Below, in pieces: positions 2,473-55,100 of a stretch of DNA of 64,000 nt; the first letter of the stretch is position 1, and every line of letters starts with the position of its first letter. Below the pieces are notes generated by a model. It searched no databases. It was given only the letters and a program-made list of their open reading frames with translations, and was not told the origin of the DNA. Origin of the DNA: Oopsacas minuta. Its lineage: Eukaryota; Animalia; Porifera. Where the stretch lies: NCBI GenBank assembly GCA_024704765.1, contig JAKMXF010000329.1, forward strand, positions 1 through 64,000, written 5' to 3'. A program made the translations under genes and the position numbers.

Positions 2473-5075
2473 TAAGGCGTTCAATAAGTCTTGTGGGTGA
2501 TATCATAGAATAAGATACAAACATTATAGACACTAATTCACTATATTATTTATTGAAAGTAATCCCACTGCAGATACACAAAGTTTTAACCTTTCCACCC
2601 ACTTGTAAAACATTTCTGTCTTCTTCGGGGATGGATTTGAAGTACTGGTACGGCCCCGTTCTGAGTGCTTGTAATGTGTAAAATCTTTGGCTTGAAGGTA
2701 GATTTTAAGCATGGAGAATAACAAAGAATAACATGGAGCTTGGTCTGATGAGTATGGTGGATGGGGAAGTAATTCTATCCTTCTACATCCAAAAGATTTT
2801 GGTAAGCCTAGCTGTATGGGAACTGGCGTTATCAATTAAAATCTTCATTCCTCGAGTTCCGGTTTTCGGGCGGTACTTTTCTATATTTTTTATCAAATTT
2901 GGAAGCACCTCTGTAATGAAAGTAGCAGTAACAGCCTTGCCACTCTCACAAGGTAATTGCAAGACAATTCCATGACTACTGAAGAAGATGGTACATAATC
3001 TTAGGTTTTCGGGGTCAGGCCTAGGAATTTTCGCCGGTTGTTCGTCGCCCCTCGCCCATGATTGCTTCTTATACAGGGTGTCTAATAAGTTCTGTTATAC
3101 ATTTTGGCGCCTTAGACAGTAGCTATTAATATACTTATGAAGTAATCTTCTAGAATTTCTTGTAGCATTTTTGGCGCTCCTTCGAATTATACCAAGTATA
3201 TATCATTCAAGTTGATGATTTCCCAGAAAATCATGTTAGAAGAAATTCGTTCAAAAATTGTCACTTTTCACGAATCTGGATTTAGCAATAGTGAAATTCT
3301 AAAAAGGCTAAAAAATGATAAAGTGAATCCCATGTTGATCTATCGCACAATAAAACGATATATTGAGACTGGGAGCGTGTCTGACAGGAAGCGAATTGGT
3401 CGTCCAAGATCCGCTCGCACACCAGCCCTGAAGAATAGTGTTAGATGTCGAATCCTGAGAAATCCCCGGCGTTCAATGCGAAAAATGTCTCGTGAATTCT
3501 GTGTTCAATCACGAAACGATACGGAAATTGGTTGTAGAGGACCTAGGAATGAAGTCCTATAAGAGGAAAAACGTACACCATCTTAACGACTCCATATATC
3601 GTAAGCGACTCAAAAGATGCATACAACTAAAAGCCCGATTCGGTTCTGGGACTGAAGATCAGATTCTCTTCTCAGATGAGAAGCTGTTCACTGTTGAGGA
3701 GGCAAGCAATCGTCAAAACGACCGTATACTTGCTTCTCGAAGTCAGGATATCCCAGTTAGCATCAAGTACATTGATAGAGTCCAGAAGCCTCTTTCTCTG
3801 ATGGTATGGGCGGGAGTGTCGGCAGACTCACGGACAAACCTGATTTTTGTCCCCCAAGGAATGAAAATAAACTCCAGACCTACAGAGAGCTGGTCTTGGA
3901 GCCTGAAATTGCGTCTGCTGGTGAGAAGCTCTTTCAAAACCATCCTTGGATTTACCAACAAGCCTTGCGCCTGCACATGCTTCAAAAGTATCCCAGGGTT
4001 GGTTCAGAGAGCAAAATATCGATTTCATAAGTAAGGATGAATGGTCACCATCAAGCCCAGGTTTAAACCCACTCGACTATTCTGTTTGGGCAAACTTGGA
4101 GAGCAGGGCCTGTGCGAAATCTCACAAGAGTTTGGAGTCCCTCAAAGTTAATGTGTTGAGTGGATGGCAGAAAATCCCACGGGAGGAACTGCGAAAAGCT
4201 GTCCATCAGTTTCGGAGCAGACTAACTTCCGTAATTCATAAAAAGGGAGGCTATATTGAATGATATTTGTAATTTGTAATTAGGAACATAAGTCCTAAGA
4301 AAATAGAAGGTTTCATGGGTTTATAATGGATAAATTTGAAATTATTGGGGAATTGACATATAACAGAACTTACTAGACACCCTGTACTTGCTGTATGGTG
4401 TTGAATAGTAGACCCACGTCTCGTCACCAGTAATAATCTCTGATAGGCGTTTAGAATAGCAGTTCTCATAAGTTTCCAAGAGTTTCTTGGCAATATTCAG
4501 TCGTGCCAACCTTTGATTCTTACTGAGCTTATGTGGGACACATTTCCCACAAATCGATCGGTAGCCAAGATCAGTCGTCAGAATTGTATGAATAGCTCCT
4601 GATGAAATCTCCATACTTTGTTCTAAATGATTGACAGTAATGCACTTGTCTTCCATGACCATACTACAATGGGTGCGATATTCTCTGAAGTGGTGGCGGA
4701 TACCGGTCTTCCAGATCGAGGCCAATCTGTGACATCAGCATCAGCACGCTTTACAGTAGATCTGGAAGGGCAATACACGCACAATATCTTCTGTAACTCG
4801 CTGAAGATCTCTATGGGCTGGATCTTGAGTATTGTGCAAAACTCTATGTGAGTTCACCATTTGAGGTTGAAATTATCATCCTTTGAAGTCATAAATTCAA
4901 CAGTGGGCATAAATTGACTACACGTAACTATCTCAAAATTCATAATTTGTATTGATAAGCTTGAAACTTTCAGCATATGGAGTTTAACTATATGGGCTTA
5001 TAATATATGAAAGTTAGATATATTACTTGACTAATTCCTAAGATATCATGACCGCAAGACTTATTGAACGCCTGA
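2473..5075 (-). mobile_element. mariner (DD34D-type) element, decayed, split by a nested Tc1/maT insertion
   Basis: TIRs are TAAGGCGTTCAATAAGTCTTG (2473) and CAAGACTTATTGAACGCCTGA (ends 5075). ORF 4342-4725 has CVPHKL and IITGDETWVYY; ORF 2533-2835 has HPPYSSDQAP. Confidence 0.9.
3074..4384 (+). mobile_element. Tc1/mariner element of maT/DD37D type, frameshifted
   Basis: TA-flanked TIRs CAGGGTGTCTAATAAGTTCTGTTAT...ATAACAGAACTTACTAGACACCCTG. Three overlapping ORFs (3212-3562, 3492-4034, 3946-4263) carry GRPRSART, FSDEKLFTVE and SPGLNPLDYSVW. Confidence 0.92.
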
Positions 5076-5689
5076 TATTATTTGTAAGACCAATTCCTTA
5101 ACTGGATAAAAGAAGCATGGAAAATATCAAAAATGGGAATTAATATTTATCCTGAAATTAGAATAATTAAACAATGGTTGAATATTTCCATGAGGAAATA
5201 CTATAACTCATAAACCCACCAGAATGACAAAATGTCATAAATATATGTGAGATGAACGCTGTTGGTGAATGCAAATGTAGCAGCCAAATGGGTAGAGTCA
5301 AACGGCATAGAAAGAAATACAGCGAGTCCAGTTCTATTTAAAACACGATTAAAATAATACACCATTTAAGACCTAATGGATAAGTGAGAGAAATTAAAAT
5401 CCACATATACGAATCAATCTACCATTTCAAGAGTGTAAAGCTCTAAGCATCGACTTAAGAGTGATCTGCTCAATTTCATAGCAACCATTGTATAAGAATA
5501 CAGACCAAATTATAATTTTAGATTTTCCTTGGGTCGTTAAGGAGACTCTATCTCAAAAGTTGATAGTATCCCGAAGCTAATTAAAAGATCACTCATAAGA
5601 ATGAACAGAGTGCAAAATCGATACAGCTAATACCGACTCACCTAGCAAGTAAGCCATGTGGTTATCATAATACAATGGACATATTTATT

Positions 5690-7150
5690 AGACTAGGAAT
5701 ACTGAGTTACCTGTGCAAACAGTTCCGAAAGATCAAAATTTGTGCGGATTACGGTGCATTCGTACATCCAAACTGATAGTAAACATGATAAATCAAGGGT
5801 TGCTAAATTCATAACAATGCAAAATCAAACAAACTAGATTGCATACTATTTTCTTCGAAACAAAATGGCCAGATGATAAAATTGTATAAAATGACCACTA
5901 TGCATATGTCAAAGTAGTTCGACAAATTGAGGGCAAATGAGAAAGTTGATTATGCCATCAATTTCACCACATAGCTGATAATCATTGACCAAATAATGCA
6001 CATGAGAGAGGACAAATATGGACAGAAACAGGAATTATGTCGAAAAATGGCATTTTGCAAGCTAAGTCACTATAGCAGGAGCAAGGAAAATTGACAAAGA
6101 TAAGATAAGTGTGAACTGAATAGAATAAGCAATGTTACCTCCAGGAACTGTGTATTCAATGACCTAGAAGAATACCACATGTAAATTATAGTATTATGTA
6201 GAAGATCAAGTACAAAAGAAATAAGGCACAGCTAAAAGTGAAAAAATAATTTCCAAAAACTGAGATAAAATACCCCTAATGCTGTTACCTATGTATTGTG
6301 CAATAAATTTATGTCTTACCATTGATGTATGAAATGATATAATCATATTAATTATAATGACGATAGGACTTAATCGGTGATATTATCAGATGCGTATCAC
6401 GACACAATCGCTGATTGTCATTTTATTGTATAATACAGAGCCTGTAAGGGTTATATTAAGCGTAGTGGTGAGTAAATAAACAGTAGTGGTTCACAGAAGG
6501 ATGAAAGTTTTGTCAGTAGCTAAAGATACATAGTGTAACAAAGACACAATTCCTTTACAAAAGCAATATGGACTCAATCAAGTAGGTTACAACTTCAAAT
6601 TACATTGAATAAATCATACCCCGTACATCCGACCAAGGAATAGAATAGAACGCCACAGTAAACATGGAGCCCCGGCTCGAAGAATTACAGATAATGGAGC
6701 TGATTTCAAGAATAATATTTGCCTCACATTACATGAAACATATAATATCAAGCTAATCTTTTCTACTCTTTCCATCCCCAGGCAAATGGGCTAGTTGAGT
6801 CGTCTGATAGAGAGCTTCAAACAGGCTCTAGTTAAGTCTTTAGAAGAAAAGAATGAAAATTAAATACGTTTTCCTAGACGGCATTCCATTCTCTATCAGT
6901 ATTAGACCAAGAGCAACAAAAATTATCAGCTTTTGAGTTGACGTATGGATCTCGAAAAGTTCGACTCCCTACCAAAGTACAAAACCAGAACTATAAGCAT
7001 CCAGAGAGTACCCTAGATCGGCGGGATGTAGAGCTCCAGTTTGAAGCATTAAAAGATGTCATGGAAGGAGCCCAGGAGTAGAATAGTCAGAAAGTCGCAG
7101 AACAGCTGCTGCACTCACAAAACGGATAAACTATCAGATTGACAAGAAAT
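5690..7150 (+). mobile_element. Highly degenerate Ty3/Gypsy LTR-retrotransposon pol remnant
   Basis: Manual translation at about 6660-6990 gives HGAPARRITDNGADF...FST/FHPQANGLVE...ATKLSAFELTYGSRKVRLP, an integrase core with frameshifts. A weak KICADYGAF RT-like motif lies near 5737. Boundaries are approximate and no LTRs were seen. Confidence 0.6.
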
Positions 7151-8810
7151 GTAGCTCAGTCTCAACTAGGAAACTTGAGATCGGATAAAATGTATTGATT
7201 GAGAATGTTTATTGGGGGGAAAGTTAAAGGACAATCGGATTGGTCCACACAACTAGGGCTAAAGTGAATCGTAGTAATGTTCAGATTCTCCGAATTAAAG
7301 ATACTAGAAAGGTGAAGAGACCAAAAGTCAAACTTTACAAGATACCCAAAAAAACACACATGCACCACGAACAAATATCAGCGTATAGATAGCCAAAGTG
7401 ATGAGGATGTTATCTAACATGAATACTAGATGAAGATATCATGAATCCATAGTTTCCTTTAGCTGGGGATGAAGAGTCAACATTTGAAACCAATGTGCCA
7501 AGAAAATTAAGGGAAGAAATATTCGAATTTCTCAAATAAATTAAAGAATGCAAATAGAATCCATGAAGACGATAGCCCAGTTAATGAATACCATCGAGAA
7601 CTTGATAAAAAGACGGGATTTTCCTTTAAGAATCTCCTAGAATGGAGCCGAGAAAATTTTTCGCCTACTAAGAATCCTGAAACGAGATTGATAACTTTGA
7701 CGCAAGTCAAGAAGAGGTTACTGAAATACTCGTTGAATAGCATTCAGAAAGTATTGAAATCAAAATACCCTTGCTTCAATAAACAAAAGAAGACTTTAAG
7801 GTTTCCACAAAGTGGCAAAATAGTATGGATTATACTACAAAGGTACTATATCCGGTTTTCTGAGATAATTATAAACAGCCTCAAATCTGATGAGCACTTA
7901 TACATACTTAAACTCTCGTTACAAGAACATTCACCATCGACAACTCCATAGAAGATTTCTGCGGTACTTGGGATGGCTAATTTCATGGAATTAAACTAGT
8001 TAATACATGCTCTATGGATAAAGTAGTTACATTACTCAGTTTGCATAGAAATACGCTACCCACAATTTCAACCTCATACAAACCTCAACAATTCGATTCT
8101 CGAAAATACTCTATCACTAATACACACACATCAAATTGATCAAGATAGATACGAGATTTCTCAAAGCTCGTGATACACCTGAACTAGTGGTTTAACCTCT
8201 TCTGCTACGAGGGACATGTAATTCAGCCATTGTGCAAGAATCAATATCTATGTTCAAACAAGTGCATTATAAAATTTTCAGTGCAGATTTACAATCAAAT
8301 TACTTCCAGTCATTCTTGCTTAAAATGTCGAGATTGAGATACCATAATTGAACTGCTGTGAAAACAATTCATGGGAAAATTAGGCATGTTCATTCTCTAG
8401 GATGGTCATCCACTTCAAAGTGTTCCGTATGCGATATCAATGACACAATTTCGGGACCACACAAAGATTATTTGTTGCATTACTTACTGATTTGCATCAC
8501 TATCTATACGGGAATATAATTATCTAGTGAGATATATTGATATTTGGTGCTCTTGTGATGGGATGGAAAACCGATAAAAAGTTAAAGAATTGAATTCATA
8601 GGCTGCTTAAATAACAGTATTTGAGTTCTCACAAAAATTTGAAAGAAAATTCTTTAATATATAATATTCTATAATATTCAATAAAATGAAACATCACCGA
8701 TTGTGTCGAATCACGATAAAATGAATATCAATACATGATTGTGCAACCACACTGAAATAATCAAATTTATTGCACAAAACATAACTAAAAGCATTAGTGA
8801 ATCATTTTCG
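6274..8810. repeat. Pair of diverged inverted repeats (about 6274-6425 and 8690-8810)
   Basis: CTAATGCT.TTA..TATGT.TTGTGCAATAAATTT and CGACACAATCG.TGAT...CATTTT occur forward at about 6274-6425 and as reverse complement at about 8690-8810. Confidence 0.4.
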
Positions 8811-48389: not shown

Positions 48390-48890
48390 TAGTGAATATT
48401 GCTATTAGTCAACTGTTCATAGCCAAACTGTTTGATCCGTAATTGCCTGAAATATAGTGCAGAGAACAATATTATAATGACTAGGTTGTGACATTTGAAA
48501 TTGAGTCACAATAATTTGCATAATATACATTGGCATTTATGTATGTGGACATTTGAAATTGAGTGACAATACTTGGTATACTACACTTTGTCAATAATGT
48601 ATGTGGTCATTTGATATTGAGTGACAATACTTTGTATACTATACTTTGTCAATAATGTATGTGGGTATTTGAAATTGAGTGAGAATACCTTAAATACTAC
48701 ACTTAGTCAATTATATATGTGGACATTTGAAATTGAGTGACAATACTTTGTATACTATACTTTGTCAATAATGTATGTGGGTATTTGAAATTGAGTGAGA
48801 ATACCTTAAATACTACACTTAGTCAATTATATATGTGGACATTTGAAATTGAGTGACAATACTTTGAATACTATACTTTGTCAATTATGT
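48390..48890 (+). repeat. Satellite segment 3, with seven 58-bp monomers at 48493-48890
   Basis: ATTTGAAATTGAGTGACAATAC... monomers start at 48493, 48551, 48609, 48667, 48725, 48783 and 48841. Segment 48609-48724 is duplicated almost exactly as 48725-48840. Confidence 0.93.
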
Positions 48891-48906
48891 TAGCGTTGAG
48901 GGCATG

Positions 48907-48941
48907 CATAGTGGTTTAATAGGGCTGTTAGTAAAGAATAG
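48907..48941 (+). repeat. 3' TIR of the RAG1-like element (heptamer-like + 16 nt + AGTAAAGAATAG)
   Basis: CATAGTG GTTTAATAGGGCTGTT AGTAAAGAATAG, directly after the TSD. Confidence 0.8.
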
Positions 48942-49281
48942 CTATTTTGGTGTGACATAGCCCGATGAGATGTATTATTTACAATTAGATTATTTTATAT
49001 AAGGAACCAACACAACTTGTGATAACAAGTATATGGCCTAAATTTCCAAGTTATGACGTCATTGATATATGTAAAATTTAAATTTTCTTCAATAATTACA
49101 TTCTACTCGACTTTATCGCCATGAAACCTATCAATTACATATGGGTTATCCGTATTTGGCAATCACCTTGATCTTATAATTTTGTTATAGAGCTTGTATT
49201 TATAGAGTTATGACGTCACACTTATGATGGAATTTATCTTATTGATTTACAAAATATACAGTATATTCATACTTAAGTTCA

Positions 49282-51516
49282 TTATAGGCAATCTTTATTG
49301 GAGATTAAAATCGTCAATAAAATCTGTGTGCTAGTTTTCTGATTGTTCATAGCATTGCAGCATTTAGATCTCGTTGTGTGTCCAGATTGACCACATCGTT
49401 CACAAATCAAAATTCTTCGATAGTTTACTAAGGTTGGATCATTTTGAGAGGTCAATCCGGCGAAGGTATCCATAATATTGGTCTCAAAACCAACTTTACG
49501 AGCTAAATTCTCCGGATATTTTCTAACTAATTTGTTGCATGATTCTGTGCCTTCTTCTGAAAATGCCTTTAAGCCATAGCTAGAATTCGACTCACGTATT
49601 AACTCCTCAGAATGGGCTAAGAGCTTGTGCAGGGTTGGAGTCATGCTAGCCCAGGGGAAGAATCTAAGATGACAAGGTAGGTATCCTTGCACAATTTCCC
49701 CAATTCCAAAGTGTTAACCTTGTGACTTGAATTGAAAACCCGAAGAATGGCTGAAAGTTGAGTATGTATCTTTGATAAGATTGGGCAATGTTGTATTGCT
49801 ACAGTTGATAGAATGCATTCAAGGTATTCAGTTTCATCAGAAAAGGCTCTTCTAGCAACATTCCCTGTTGAGGTGGTTCCACCGCTAGAATTAGGCTGGT
49901 CAACCTTTAATCCTGTCTTCTCCTGAATAAATGTTTGAAGGAATTTCATTGACTCCTTGATAACTGGTGAAGTTGGGGACCAGGTAAACTTTTCGATGCG
50001 AAGATGATATACCAGCAAATTGAATCACCTAAAATTGGTTTAATTATGTGAAGATAAATTCTGAATGATTAATGGAGTACTAGATTACTTACCTAAATAC
50101 GCCTGTGTATGAATGAAGTGGAGATGCTGGATGTATGTTAATCTCTGAAATTGGTTGATGAGTTAAATTGAAGCGTTCATTAGTCGAAAGAGCAAAGAAC
50201 GACTCAATGTCATCAATGTGCGAAAATAGCTCGATTGCATCTGTGATATTTCTGTTGATGGGGAACCCTTCAAGAACTAAATTACGGTCCTTCAAATCTT
50301 TATGTGTGGCAGTGCACATCTGACAACTGGCTCCTCCAGCTCCAGAGAGAATGGCTGCCATCTTCTCATCAAACATTGAACGGATAATATCGACATTGAC
50401 AACACCATTTTCTAAAGGAATCCCATTTTGCAACATCGCTATATCGGGATTAATCATAGTCTCCATGAAGGAACGAATATTTTCTTCGCATTCTGTCGCA
50501 GCGCAGAGAAAAATAGGTCTTTGAGCGAAGGGTGAACTAGGGGATTTATTCTGCCAAACAATCCTGTTTGTTACAGTGTGGATGGAGATGGGCTTGAAAC
50601 AAAACAGAATGAAGTTTTTGGTGAAAGTATTAGTTGTCTGCTGGTTGTAGATAGTGCGACAACCAGAACCATCTAAGCCATCTGCGATTTTAAATGTGAG
50701 TGGGAATTCTTCACTTGTGGGGCGATCTACCATTGATAATATTCTTTCCAGGGTTTTCTGAACTTGAAGACAATATGGTGCGTATATACCTATTAGTTTA
50801 GCTGGATTAGGATATGAAGTTATACTGGATCGCGAAATCATGACATCTCTCAGATTAGCTAGCTTGCTGTAAGATGGGAAATGTATATTGTCTGGTAGAA
50901 GTGTTTGACGTAATTGAGTGTATTTTCGTCTGCCCACTTCAAGTAAATCTAACAGGAACAAGGCTTTATCAACTGGAACATGCTTGTTACTGAGGTTACA
51001 GAATCCTCCACTGACAATAATCTCTTTGGCTACCGTAGCAACCTGACGATTATTCTCCTCATTTGCCAATAGTTGTAATGAGAGTGCTGCAATACTTATT
51101 TCTGTAGTATTCTCAATAACTGAGAGTGACTTAATGCATTCTAGCAGACTTGACAATCGAGTACGCTGTTGTTGTAGAGAGAGATCATCAGGATGCTTTC
51201 TATGACTCATTGAATAAATGGGAACTCACCATCAGAAGACGACTCTAGTAAATCAGAAACACGATTTTCTTTAACTCAGGTTTCATGGAAATGTTAGAAT
51301 GCCACCATTCTCCTTCTAAACAATCTAATGATCTCTTCGCCTTCTTGAATCTGTCCTGAATTCTTAACAGCAACGTTTCCAAGAGTTTCGTATTATCAGA
51401 GTCTATTCAAAGTCTTCTATGAAATATTTTGTCGTTTACAAGACACAATTGTTATTGTCTTTCAGGATTCTTGCCAATTCGAGGCGGGATTTTGGGAAAG
51501 TTAACTCTTCTGTCAT
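49282..51516 (-). pseudogene. RAG1-like / Transib DDE transposase, intron-containing, inactivated (one stop and one frameshift in the core, more in the N-terminus)
   Basis: GLDGSG (D at 50671-50673), MFDEKM (D at 50368-50370), SCQMCTAT, PLHSY, TGNVARR, TPTLHKLLAH, SEEGTESCNKLVRKY (E at 49543-49545), and C-terminal CERCGQSGHTTRSKC. Putative ATG at 51516. Confidence 0.92.
50029..50092 (-). other. 64-nt GT-AG spliceosomal intron in the RAG1-like gene (phase 2)
   Basis: Donor AG|GTAAGT and acceptor AATTTTAG|G. Splicing joins ...LHSYTGVFR to *FNLLVYHLR in frame (the TGA is probably from TGG). Confidence 0.85.
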
Positions 51517-52158
51517 TGTTTTCAAGAAATTCCGAAAAATAGGTTTTATTATATATTCAGTAGATTATATATAGAAGTCACTATAATGAATTTCAAGAAC
51601 GAAATTCATTACTATCTCATTCCATTGTTACAGTATGCTACAATGGGAATTTCCTAGCAATGAAAAGTTGTAATGGAATGTCATTGAAAATTATAGGTTG
51701 CGCTCTGTTTCGGGTTTTGTGGTTTTAGATTATGTTTTTAGGAATCGTAATGCGTGTATCCGATTAATTTTGCGCTGTTGTTTTGTGTTGTTTATTTTTC
51801 CTGACACTTTAGGTATTTCTCTTTGTAAAAATTCTGTACGGATTTTACTAGATTTTAGAAATATTATGTTCACGAAATATATACAAGATACAGTCATGGA
51901 AACAAGATATTTAGAATTAGCATAGTCGAAATGTATAAAGTATACCAGATTAGTAACATTCCATTATGTAATTGCTCTTACAGGTTCATTTGAAATTGGG
52001 GCTAAATTTAGAAATCATGAAGCCGCAATTTTCCTATAAATATTTTAAATCTTTGATTAAGAAATCTTACAGCTTCTAGGGTCTCAATCACTTAGATATT
52101 TTAAATAAGAATCATTTAAACAATATAAAATGAAATAAAGCCATCAAATACGGAATCA

Positions 52159-52193
52159 ATTTTTTGTCTATTCTTTGCTTCTAAATCACTGCG
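52159..52193 (-). repeat. 5' TIR of the RAG1-like element (heptamer-like + 7 nt + AGCAAAGAATAG)
   Basis: The minus strand reads CGCAGTG ATTTAGA AGCAAAGAATAG ACAAAAAAT, directly inside the TSD. Confidence 0.8.
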
Positions 52194-55100
52194 GCATGTA
52201 TCTACTTAAATTTTGAGATTTTGCTAATTTGTTTATACTATATCAAAAAACATCAATAATTCACATATGATTAATCTAAAAATGTGAAAATCGGATTCAG
52301 TATGTTCGATATATTTGGTGAAGTTTTATTGAATCCATTTACTTCCTGAAAACATGATAAATACATAGTTATGCGACTATTTCAGAATTGTATACCGTAA
52401 TGAGGGTGTAATCCTTTCTTTTGACAACAGACAATCGAACAAACTAACAAACAACAATTGAGATTTAATAATATAGACTAGTGGAAATTGCTTCAATCGA
52501 TGTTAGGTATCATACCTGCTCCAACTCCAGCTATTTCGCTAATTTCTCCAAAACTGTACAAAATTTGTTATCGAATAGTATTGTGCACCGACACGAACAT
52601 TCGCAAAAATATTTTGTAGTACTGCTAAATCTTCATGGATTTAATCTAAATTGTGAATGATGAGCCATTAAGGTATAGATAACGTGAAAAGTAGTAAGCA
52701 ACCTTTCTCTTCGGATCAAATGGCCAAATGATGCACCCTCTTATATATACTGATGTACCCTAATATATATATATATATATATATTTATAATATATAGTTA
52801 TATAATGTATCACTATGTCTACAGATTAATTTCCCTTATCGTATCCAGTAAAACCTCTATAAGTAGGATCCCTACAAATTGGGAACGTCTAGAAGCGGGG
52901 AAATTTAGTTAGAATATTAATTCATTTCCATAGAAACGAACCTCTAAATCGTGGAATGGGCACAATTTAGAGAAATTATGCTTTAGCCCATTCCAATTTA
53001 GCTCTAAAGTTTGTAAATCTACAAAAGATTTTCTTGAATAATTTTTGTGCTAAATTTGGATAATACACGTATTTAAAGCTCTGATGAATTGAAATCTTTG
53101 GGTTTCTGAGAAGAAAATTTCTTACAAATTTGTATATTCAGCCAACAACCTATGGACACAATATATTTGTCAATTATGGGTGAAATAACAGTCGTTGGAG
53201 GAAGTAGATATACATATTCACTCAAGGACATTACATTTTAATTTATAAATGTGAAGGGGGGTTATTAAGATTTCGTCGGTCTTTTCTCTTCCGATTACAG
53301 AGATTCTACGATAGATACCCTACTTACCATACCTTAGTACTACAAGTTTCAATGCATGGATAATTGCATACATGGTCATCCATTTATCCTATAATGGAGC
53401 AATTTTATACATTTTCCTGAGGAATGAAATCTGTACAACCACATCATCTGGAAACTAAACTTAGATATTAAACATTTGTGGTATTGATAGTTTTGTATTC
53501 TGGGATGATAAATATGACCCAAATTCACTGTGCTCATATACCTGTACCTAGATAAGGCACAACCGGAAACAGGTTTAGATGAATAACTTAGACATAGGAG
53601 TGTGTAAAATTGGAAATAATTTTTGGCATAAAATTTACTTGTGAGACATCCATGGTATATAATTGAAGAATGTTACACTGATGAGAAATTCGAAATCTAG
53701 GTTCGCAAAATCATGATGAATTTTGGAATAATTGGGTTGTTGTAATTTGGAAATGTAGAGGCAGTTATTTAATATTCTGAGTGAATTATTTATTACAATG
53801 AGGAAGTGTTTTGATGAAATTGCAGTCAAAACTACAAAGGCATCTTGTGCGTTAGCAACATTTTGGTATGGAATGACCCCAAGAAATAGCATATCTTTTC
53901 AAATATATGCCAAGTAGACATATTTTGACACATTCCTGATATTTAACATATAATGATTGATATTCTATTATTCTACAACTATGCAGCATATTTATTGCGG
54001 AAATAATTCACCGTTTCTGCAATATAGATAATACTTAAAAAGTTGTTGAATCAGCCACTGAATTCCTATCACAAACTCACAAGTTGCACTGGGGCTCCAT
54101 GTATAGCACACTATAGTGGCATCTATAACTATAGTATCTCTCTAATAACACATAAGATGTAATCATGTATCTATTAGAATATGCAAAGAATATCATGCAA
54201 ATTTGATGCCGTGGTAGATGCGCTGGCAATATCGTGTTAGACGGCCATTTAAAGGGAAATAATTGTAACTAGATCAGCTAGTCCACTAAAGTCGAACTAG
54301 GGGTTACACAATTCGGGTAAGACAAATTTTGAGGATGGAATATTGCATATCCCTGAGACATTCAAGTGTTGCTATGCCAAAAATATTCCCAGATATTGTC
54401 AAGTCCCACTCAAACGATGTGATGTTTTATTGATACGATCATCGACATAGAATACTTTAGTATTAAACTGAAGGAGCTCTATGTATGCATTTCAACCACT
54501 TCAAAATGTGTCCAAAAGTGACATTTTAAATGAATATTGCTGAAAAAATGTAATTTTAAGACTTAAAAAATGGTGCTAAAATCTCATTTTAGTGTGGGGA
54601 TTTGTTAAAACGAAGTTGTTAATTTTTGTGTTCATTTATTCTCAAACTAGTAGGCACTAACTAAATCCAACTAGAAAATTTATACGGAAAATTATGTTTG
54701 AGCCTGGTGGCTCCGGCTATATCAGTAGTATCATTGGCGATCAAAATTTGTTATTGTCTGCATTATACCACTTCCAGACTACTCGAATTCAAATATTCAG
54801 ATACATCACCATTATAGAACTATGGATTTCACCATATGTGGATGAAAAGCAGACCAATAGCACCAAACAACACCACTATTCAAAGGTTTTATGCTCTACA
54901 ACTAGAATTTTCTAGATTTACACATTAAATCAATTCAAGGGCTTCAATCCCTCGATCCCGGTGCATTTTTCCCACTGGATTCGGTGTATCCAGGAATTGA
55001 GTATAATTCAGAATTTTTGATCACTTACTCATTGATATATTCTAACTGCTTTTCTTTGGTGCATATCCTTTGAATCATCATTTGTGAATATAATCTTTTA

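Follow-up and report, generated by a model that had tools for sequence, protein, structure and literature searches.

The transposon at positions 48907-52193, on the minus strand, of a window from the glass sponge Oopsacas minuta raises the question of whether it is a Transib, a RAG1-like (RAG1L) element, or something in between. The window is the whole stretch of DNA that we analyzed, the first 64,000 nucleotides of contig JAKMXF010000329.1 (assembly GCA_024704765.1). Transibs are RAG2-less relatives of RAG1, the antibody-gene recombinase. A sequence-only reading of the window had proposed that the element encodes a decayed transposase with a mosaic core, in part Transib-like and in part RAG1-like, and that it could represent a lineage intermediate between Transib and RAG1L. 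We conclude that it is very probably a copy, complete in length but dead, of an autonomous O. minuta transposon of the Transib superfamily, of the type that Tao et al. 2022 (Natl Sci Rev, PMC9435367) defined as Subgroup I.

First, the element is complete. It spans 3,287 bp, with CATGC on both sides as a duplication of 5 bp at the target site (TSD), and in its own orientation the termini read CGCAGTG... and ...CACTATG. The O. minuta assembly contains at least three copies beyond the one in the window: L001:5328-8637 (94% identity to the window copy; TSD CTCCT), L004:4040-7314 (93% identity; TSD TAATA), and L005:~4163-7391 (92% identity; truncated at the 5' end). The two full-length sister copies have perfect termini (CACAGTG...CACTGTG), so the odd ends of the window copy reflect single-base decay. 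Because the three copies that retain both ends also have different TSDs, the copies are independent insertions of one mobile family. Divergence is 5-8% between pairs of copies and 2-4.5% from their majority reading, and the element is covered at repeat-like depth in the organism's public DNA runs. A 5-bp TSD together with CACNGTG-type ends is expected of a member of the Transib superfamily, and we found both in this family; a paralogous family from the same genome (family B) also has a 5-bp TSD, TAGGG. The boundaries, the duplication, and the CAC-type ends were thus read correctly from the sequence.

The transposase is decayed, as had been claimed, and comparison with the sister copies confirmed the lesions in the window copy. 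All four copies that we examined are broken, each in its own way; for instance, the frameshifts in L001 differ from those in the window. When the four copies are combined by majority, the resulting reading frame of about 730 codons has no interruption. Intact relatives of 723-725 amino acids are collinear with the three coding pieces of the window (51210-50092, with 373 amino acids; 50018-49641, with 125 codons; and 49692-49282, with 136 codons). The closest proteins in a library of 1.8 billion are O. minuta gene models (73-93% identity), the host is identified by O. minuta proteins and contigs that are nearly identical to the window's sequence, and UniProt names the O. minuta paralogues either [quoted passage not shown] or "Dna-mediated transposase." When the three pieces were analyzed on their own, Pfam gave only a sub-threshold match to RAG1. 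Only two matches came from searching proteins by words with the alignment of the family, and a search with an intact sponge open reading frame (ORF) returned only sponge or unlabelled relatives.

To place the protein, we relied on profiles and structures. A profile built from full-length relatives was compared to the proteins in PDB, and the best score was to HzTransib from Helicoverpa zea (204.5 bits), followed by the amphioxus protein BbRAG1L (135 bits) and RAG1 (119 bits or less). Each half of the protein also scores best against HzTransib (92 and 112 bits), and when solved structures were ranked by sequence piece by piece, the order was again HzTransib, then amphioxus RAG1L, then RAG1. For structure, we used an AlphaFold model of an intact 547-amino-acid sponge ORF (from family B; pLDDT of 86.6). 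HzTransib was again the best match (Z of 32.3 and 24% identity), followed by RAG1 (Z of about 31 and 15-17% identity) and BbRAG1L (Z of 27.6). The motifs GLDGSG, FD(E/G)KM, GTES, CQMC, and LHKLLAH align to those of RAG1, as the sequence-only reading had stated, and also to those of HzTransib; the catalytic residues D, D, and E are all present, as is the C2H2 zinc site. Our statements about HzTransib (PDB 6pqn, 6pqr, and 6pqx) are based on these alignments and on Tao et al. 2022 and Martin et al. 2020.

Gene content points the same way. A RAGL transposon (RAG1L-RAG2L) carries a RAG2-like gene with kelch and PHD domains, whereas these 3.3-kb, TSD-bounded elements have a single RAG1-core transposase gene, as expected for a Transib. 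The list of ORFs includes no second gene or second ORF within the TSDs, and tblastn finds just one transposase in the window. Nor is there a RING/ZDD region: the N-terminal 105 residues of the intact relatives contain 0-3 cysteines with no zinc-finger pattern, and there were no matches to Pfam's RING families. Since the protein scores best against HzTransib, the element has a single gene, and the N terminus lacks zinc fingers, we consider the element to be a Transib and not a RAGL transposon. We also considered whether it might be the remnant of a RAGL element that lost RAG2L, that is, a solo RAG1L. Invertebrate RAG1L proteins do share its nonamer-binding domain (NBD*) and its CCGHC-type tail (CTT_CCGHC), and Martin et al. 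2020 envisage that Transib might have arisen from RAGL through the loss of RAG2L. However, TSD-bounded complete copies from three families contain only the one gene, the N-terminal region lacks cysteine-rich RING/ZDD motifs, and the BbRAG1L profile score is 70 bits below that of HzTransib. On the basis of the profile scores, the single gene, and the N terminus, we reject a solo RAG1L as the element's identity, and we view this origin as extremely improbable.

Another alternative is that the element comes from a genuine Transib-RAG1L intermediate, a lineage not sampled before that has a mosaic core and falls in neither of the published subgroups. The element has the NBD-like domain, the CCGHC-type tail, and the stretch of the zinc-binding domain that RAG1 and RAG1L possess and that is missing from HzTransib, and the model shares 485-492 superposed residues with RAG1 and BbRAG1L, more than the 466 that it shares with HzTransib. 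Also, Tao et al. 2022 name no sponge, either in the paper or in its supplements, where the part of the species table from A to H lists none, and Martin et al. 2020 does not mention them. But this set of features is how Subgroup I was already defined in print, the element has neither a RAG2L gene nor a RING/ZDD region, and both the scores of the two halves and the structural identity (24% versus 15-17%) favor HzTransib. Furthermore, the signals that had been called RAG1-like do not hold up. The DEK motif is present in the window copy and in L004, but L001 and L005 have DGK, as do family B and HzTransib, and in the wider relatives that we aligned, the site is DGK, DRK, or DLK and never DEK. Similarly, GxESxNKLxR had been taken as RAG1-like, but E-S-x-NK-L is common across the superfamily. 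Given the best scores to HzTransib in both halves and the variation of DEK between copies, we reject the mosaic core, and we consider a separate intermediate lineage to be very unlikely.

We now turn to the characters that assign this Transib to a subgroup, beginning with the NBD. The sequence-only reading had aligned a segment of the protein to the NBD of RAG1 by eye, and both profile and structure bear this out. The family profile aligns continuously through the NBDs of RAG1 and BbRAG1L, and it matches a crystal chain with just the NBD (3gna; E = 0.0065). In the AlphaFold model of the window's 373-amino-acid piece (pLDDT of 89), residues 1-66 superpose on residues 390-456 of 3gna_A (Z of 7.2 and root mean square deviation of 2.3 Å). 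These residues form a three-helix fold directly before the DDBD. Residues 2-373 of the model superpose on RAG1 from its residue 391 onward, whereas HzTransib aligns only from residue 75, in the next domain, which agrees with the statement in the sequence-only reading that canonical insect Transib lacks an NBD. Since structure and profile both match and the segment precedes the DDBD just as in RAG1, we take it as established, from sequence profiles and a predicted structure, that the segment is a true homologue of the NBD of RAG1.

Second, the tail C-x2-C-x3-GH-x5-C, which had been noticed near the C terminus, is confirmed as a zinc knuckle of the CCGHC type. A CCHC knuckle is present in all of the C-terminally complete relatives from our first search and in the closest intact relatives, and relatives P0095, P0139, and P0154 have the exact C-x2-C-x3-GH-x4-C spacing. 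The knuckle is located at the same site as the CTT1 tail of Subgroup I, after the SDP motif. The superposition of BbRAG1L extends to residue 528 of the model and therefore includes the knuckle. Third, about 50 positions of the profile after CxxC (419-469) align to RAG1 and BbRAG1L, while HzTransib has about 12 residues there. By its position, this stretch is probably the alpha11-alpha12 region, which is retained in Subgroup I and was lost in Subgroup II. The sequence-only reading had staked its proposal on two points, that the N-terminal segment would match the NBD and that the protein would not nest among Transibs with the same tail. The match to the NBD exists, but the protein does lie among Transib relatives with the same tail.

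Fourth, the terminal inverted repeats (TIRs) are asymmetric, as in Subgroup I. Both ends share a terminal 12-mer, which reads CACAGTGGTTTA in the sister copies, and the 9-mer AAAGAATAG, which is separated from the heptamer by 10 nucleotides at the 5' end and by 19 nucleotides at the 3' end. A GAATAG-type 9-mer occurs at the same 5' spacing in two other sponge families. In family B, the 9-mers are AGAGAATTA (at 10 nucleotides) and AAAGAATGG (at 19 nucleotides); in family C, which is represented by L006 from another assembly and encodes the intact 725-amino-acid protein P0181, they are TGGAAATAG and AGGGAATAG, at the same two spacings. The layout is thus found in three sponge families with around 59% amino acid identity. 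In the intact metagenomic relative P0139, no TIRs were recognizable.

We also considered whether the shared 9-mer and its spacing might be a matter of chance, or a historical feature of the ends with no role in transposition. Two A/T-rich ends of about 40 nucleotides could share a 9-mer by chance with no great improbability, the window contains four further occurrences of the motif, and copies from one family share it by descent. On the other hand, the 10/19 layout holds across the three families even though their coding DNA is only about 69-73% identical or their proteins only about 59% identical, and conservation between families is higher in the 3' TIR than in the interior. The RAGL element of Aureococcus (AanRAGL) has the same 9-bp offset, with a box at 4 or 13 bp after its 13-bp terminal block. 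We therefore think it unlikely that the layout is incidental.

Several observations weigh against assigning the element to Subgroup I or against parts of our account. The assignment is based on characters rather than on a phylogeny. A Z score of 7.2, by itself, is within the range expected by chance for a small helical domain. The GRPR/K motif of RAG1 is absent, as the sequence-only reading had noted: the window copy has HRKH, the family conserves just an RK dipeptide, and among the relatives that we compared, only P0139 has KRPR. The knuckle of the O. minuta family has GH-x5-C instead of the canonical x4, and a few of the more distant sponge relatives have no match to the CCHC pattern in their last 120 residues. 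The four public runs that contain the element are DNA-like contigs with no spliced joints, so the splicing of its intron rests on comparison, not on RNA. Finally, which domain binds which motif, including which one would bind the 9-mer, is assigned by analogy.

In the definition of Tao et al. 2022 (PMC9435367), Subgroup I Transibs have a CTT1 (CCGHC) tail, keep the alpha11-alpha12 region, and have asymmetric TIRs. The same authors reported that the transposases of both Transib subgroups have an equivalent of the NBD, and they called Subgroup I "intermediates" between Transib and RAG1L. Their examples include MleTransib, PbaTransib, HvuTransib-9, and the bacterial CthTransib. The sponge element resembles these in having a single gene, a 5-bp TSD, heptamer-type ends, asymmetric bipartite TIRs, an NBD equivalent, the zinc-domain stretch, and the tail. 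It differs from Subgroup I as published in its hexactinellid host, in GH-x5-C instead of x4, and in the RK/HRKH that begins its NBD. The combination of features and the "intermediate" reading had therefore already been published, but the host phylum, Porifera, is undescribed in the literature that we searched, where no paper linked Transib and Porifera in substance.

Like the sponge protein, HzTransib is a DDE transposase without RAG2, and its element likewise has ends of the CACAGTG type and a TSD of 5 bp. It lacks the NBD (its alignments begin at residues 75-81 of the sponge protein), its zinc-binding domain is shorter by about 40 residues, symmetric TIRs are described for it, and it belongs to Subgroup II, with a different tail (CTT2; Tao et al. 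2022, PMC9435367). ProtoRAG, the amphioxus element that encodes BbRAG1L (RAGL-B; PDB 6b40), is a more distant match that shares the NBD*, the zinc-domain stretch, bipartite TIRs, the 5-bp TSD, and the CCGHC tail, which in ProtoRAG acts as a DNA-binding clamp. ProtoRAG uses nick-hairpin chemistry. Unlike the sponge element, it has a RAG2L gene, an N-terminal RING/zinc-finger region, and TIR spacers of 27 and 31 bp. AanRAGL and PflRAGL-A have asymmetric bipartite ends, as the sponge element does, but both encode RAG2L. The 10-bp box of AanRAGL lies 10 or 19 bp from the heptamer, and PflRAG1L-A, in which a true GRPR/K motif is present, combines an NBD that reads DNA with CTT_CCGHC. Vertebrate RAG1 and its recombination signal sequences share with the sponge element the CACAGTG heptamer, the fold of the NBD (3gna), the catalytic D, D, and E, the C2H2 zinc site, and an A-rich distal box at two spacings, but the spacers are 10/19 in the sponge rather than 12/23. 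The sponge element also has no RAG2 and no RING region, it has a zinc knuckle where RAG1 has an acidic tail, and it is mobile, whereas vertebrate RAG1 is a domesticated recombinase.

By analogy with these systems, we can propose how the element would have moved. The intact ancestor would have encoded one transposase of about 730 amino acids, with an N-terminal helical region, the NBD-like domain, the DDBD, the pre-RNase H, the RNase H (D, D, and E), a zinc-binding domain that retained the stretch lost in HzTransib, the CTD, and the CCHC tail, in that order. A dimer of the transposase would pair both ends, introduce nicks at the heptamer's CAC, and form hairpins on the flanking DNA; the excised element would then be inserted via a 5-bp staggered cut. 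This nick-hairpin, cut-and-paste chemistry is presumed from HzTransib, ProtoRAG, and RAG. The core and the CCHC tail may read the terminal 12-mer, as in BbRAG1L, and the NBD-like domain may read the A/T-rich 9-mer, as in RAG1. If so, the unequal 10/19 spacing would be an asymmetry similar to 12/23 and would favor the pairing of unlike ends.

The features of the window copy are listed in the table. The ORF begins about 100 codons upstream of the first coding piece, with an ATG (51516-51514) that was identified by comparison to the sister copies. The sequence-only reading had proposed an intron, a tryptophan codon mutated to TGA, and a frameshift near 49665. Comparison of the copies supports the 64-nucleotide intron, and the TGA is indeed a tryptophan codon in two sister copies. 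The frameshift is due to a 1-nucleotide deletion, as proposed, near 49653-49657. In family B, which has no intron, a 547-codon ORF is continuous through IFRWFNLLVYHL; this and the collinearity of the intact relatives also support the intron.

Features of the O. minuta Transib copy (positions in the window;., no strand).
Feature	Position	Strand	Remarks
TSD CATGC	52194..52198	.	5' side of the element; sister copies have a different 5-bp TSD at the same boundary
5' terminal heptamer CGCAGTG	52187..52193	-	Decayed from CACAGTG; opens the 12-nt block common to both ends
Subterminal 9-mer, 5' TIR	52168..52176	-	10 nt inside the heptamer
5' non-coding part	51517..52167	-	Short ORFs only, none with a match; too small for a second gene
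Transposase, N-terminal ~100 codons	51211..51516	-	Helical, without zinc-finger cysteines; here with stops and 1-, 1-, and 4-nt deletions
NBD-like domain	51013..51210	-	Residues 1-66 of the 373-aa piece; basic HRKH at the GRPR site of RAG1
Rest of exon 1: DDBD, pre-RNase H, RNase H, ZnC2, and the stretch that HzTransib lacks	50093..51012	-	
RNase H catalytic D codons	50673-50671; 50370-50368	-	
ZnC2 CQMC	50325-50314	-	
Probable intron, 64 nt, GT..AG	50029..50092	-	Kept in 4/4 copies; absent from family B
Exon 2: GGTTSTGN, ZnH2, catalytic Glu, CTD, and tail	49282..50028	-	Frame shifted by a 1-nt deletion
In-frame TGA, mutated from TGG (Trp)	50025..50027	-	TGG in L004 and L005; T>C at 50025 in 4/4 public runs
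1-nt deletion (frameshift)	near 49653-49657	-	From sister copies and public runs
ZnH2 His codons	49629-49627; 49614-49612	-	
Catalytic Glu codon	49545-49543	-	
CCHC zinc-knuckle tail CERCGQSGHTTRSKC, C-x2-C-x3-GH-x5-C	49360..49404	-	
Subterminal 9-mer, 3' TIR	48933..48941	+	19 nt inside the heptamer; spacing kept in families B and C
3' terminal heptamer	48907..48913	+	CATAGTG on the + strand, decayed from CACAGTG
TSD CATGC	48902..48906	.	3' side of the element

Some other observations concern the protein, its relatives, and the surroundings of the element. Across the sponge relatives, the N-terminal 70 or so residues (51516-51300 in the window) are conserved and helical, with the pattern ..SRL[DE][LF]A+ILK.N...., no cysteines, and no match in Pfam; they may form a further DNA-binding or regulatory module. 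The family B element (L004:7867-11239, in O. minuta contig JAKMXF010000099.1) lies 550 bp from a copy of the window's family, and its N-terminal part is broken. Directly at the 3' end of the intact Transib on L006 (ENA ERZ25071281), there is a palindrome of about 200 bp (5560-5760) that resembles a foldback element or a miniature inverted-repeat transposable element; the expected matching 5-bp duplication was not seen there. Four of the intact relatives of 723-725 amino acids (P0178, P0180, P0181, and P0184) belong to clusters of 16-37 members from ENA assemblies with contigs of up to 2.5 Mb, which suggests that there are recently active Transib families in what are probably assemblies of sponges.

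Both flanks of the window copy are repetitive. A tandem repeat of 58 bp (116 bp as a higher-order unit), with about seven units at 48490-48890, adjoins the 3' end of the element. Its summed contig depth in the public DNA runs exceeds the element's by a factor of 100-1000. It therefore resembles an abundant satellite, with the Transib copy at the edge of the array. On the other side, the region at 52172-52400 has a summed depth of 25,000-170,000 in the DNA runs and is another high-copy repeat, distinct from the 58-bp satellite.

Overall, these results add glass sponges to the hosts of the type of Transib that is believed to be similar to the RAG recombinase's ancestor, and they leave the current picture of RAG evolution unchanged. 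With the 10/19 layout in three sponge families and the intact relatives, the sponge Transibs are a convenient RAG2-less system. They raise the questions of how the NBD and the zinc-knuckle tail divide the recognition of the ends and whether the asymmetry of the spacers already matters. More speculatively, and with a low chance of being right, the sponge Transibs could be a deep lineage within Subgroup I that has the full presumed ancestral tool-kit except for RAG2, namely, the NBD-like domain, the zinc-domain stretch that contacts RAG2, the CCGHC clamp, and the heptamer-10/19-9-mer ends, and the 9-bp offset might enforce a pairing rule similar to the 12/23 rule. If this is true, then the intact relatives of 723-725 amino acids would be a natural system for asking whether the 12/23 rule predates RAG2.

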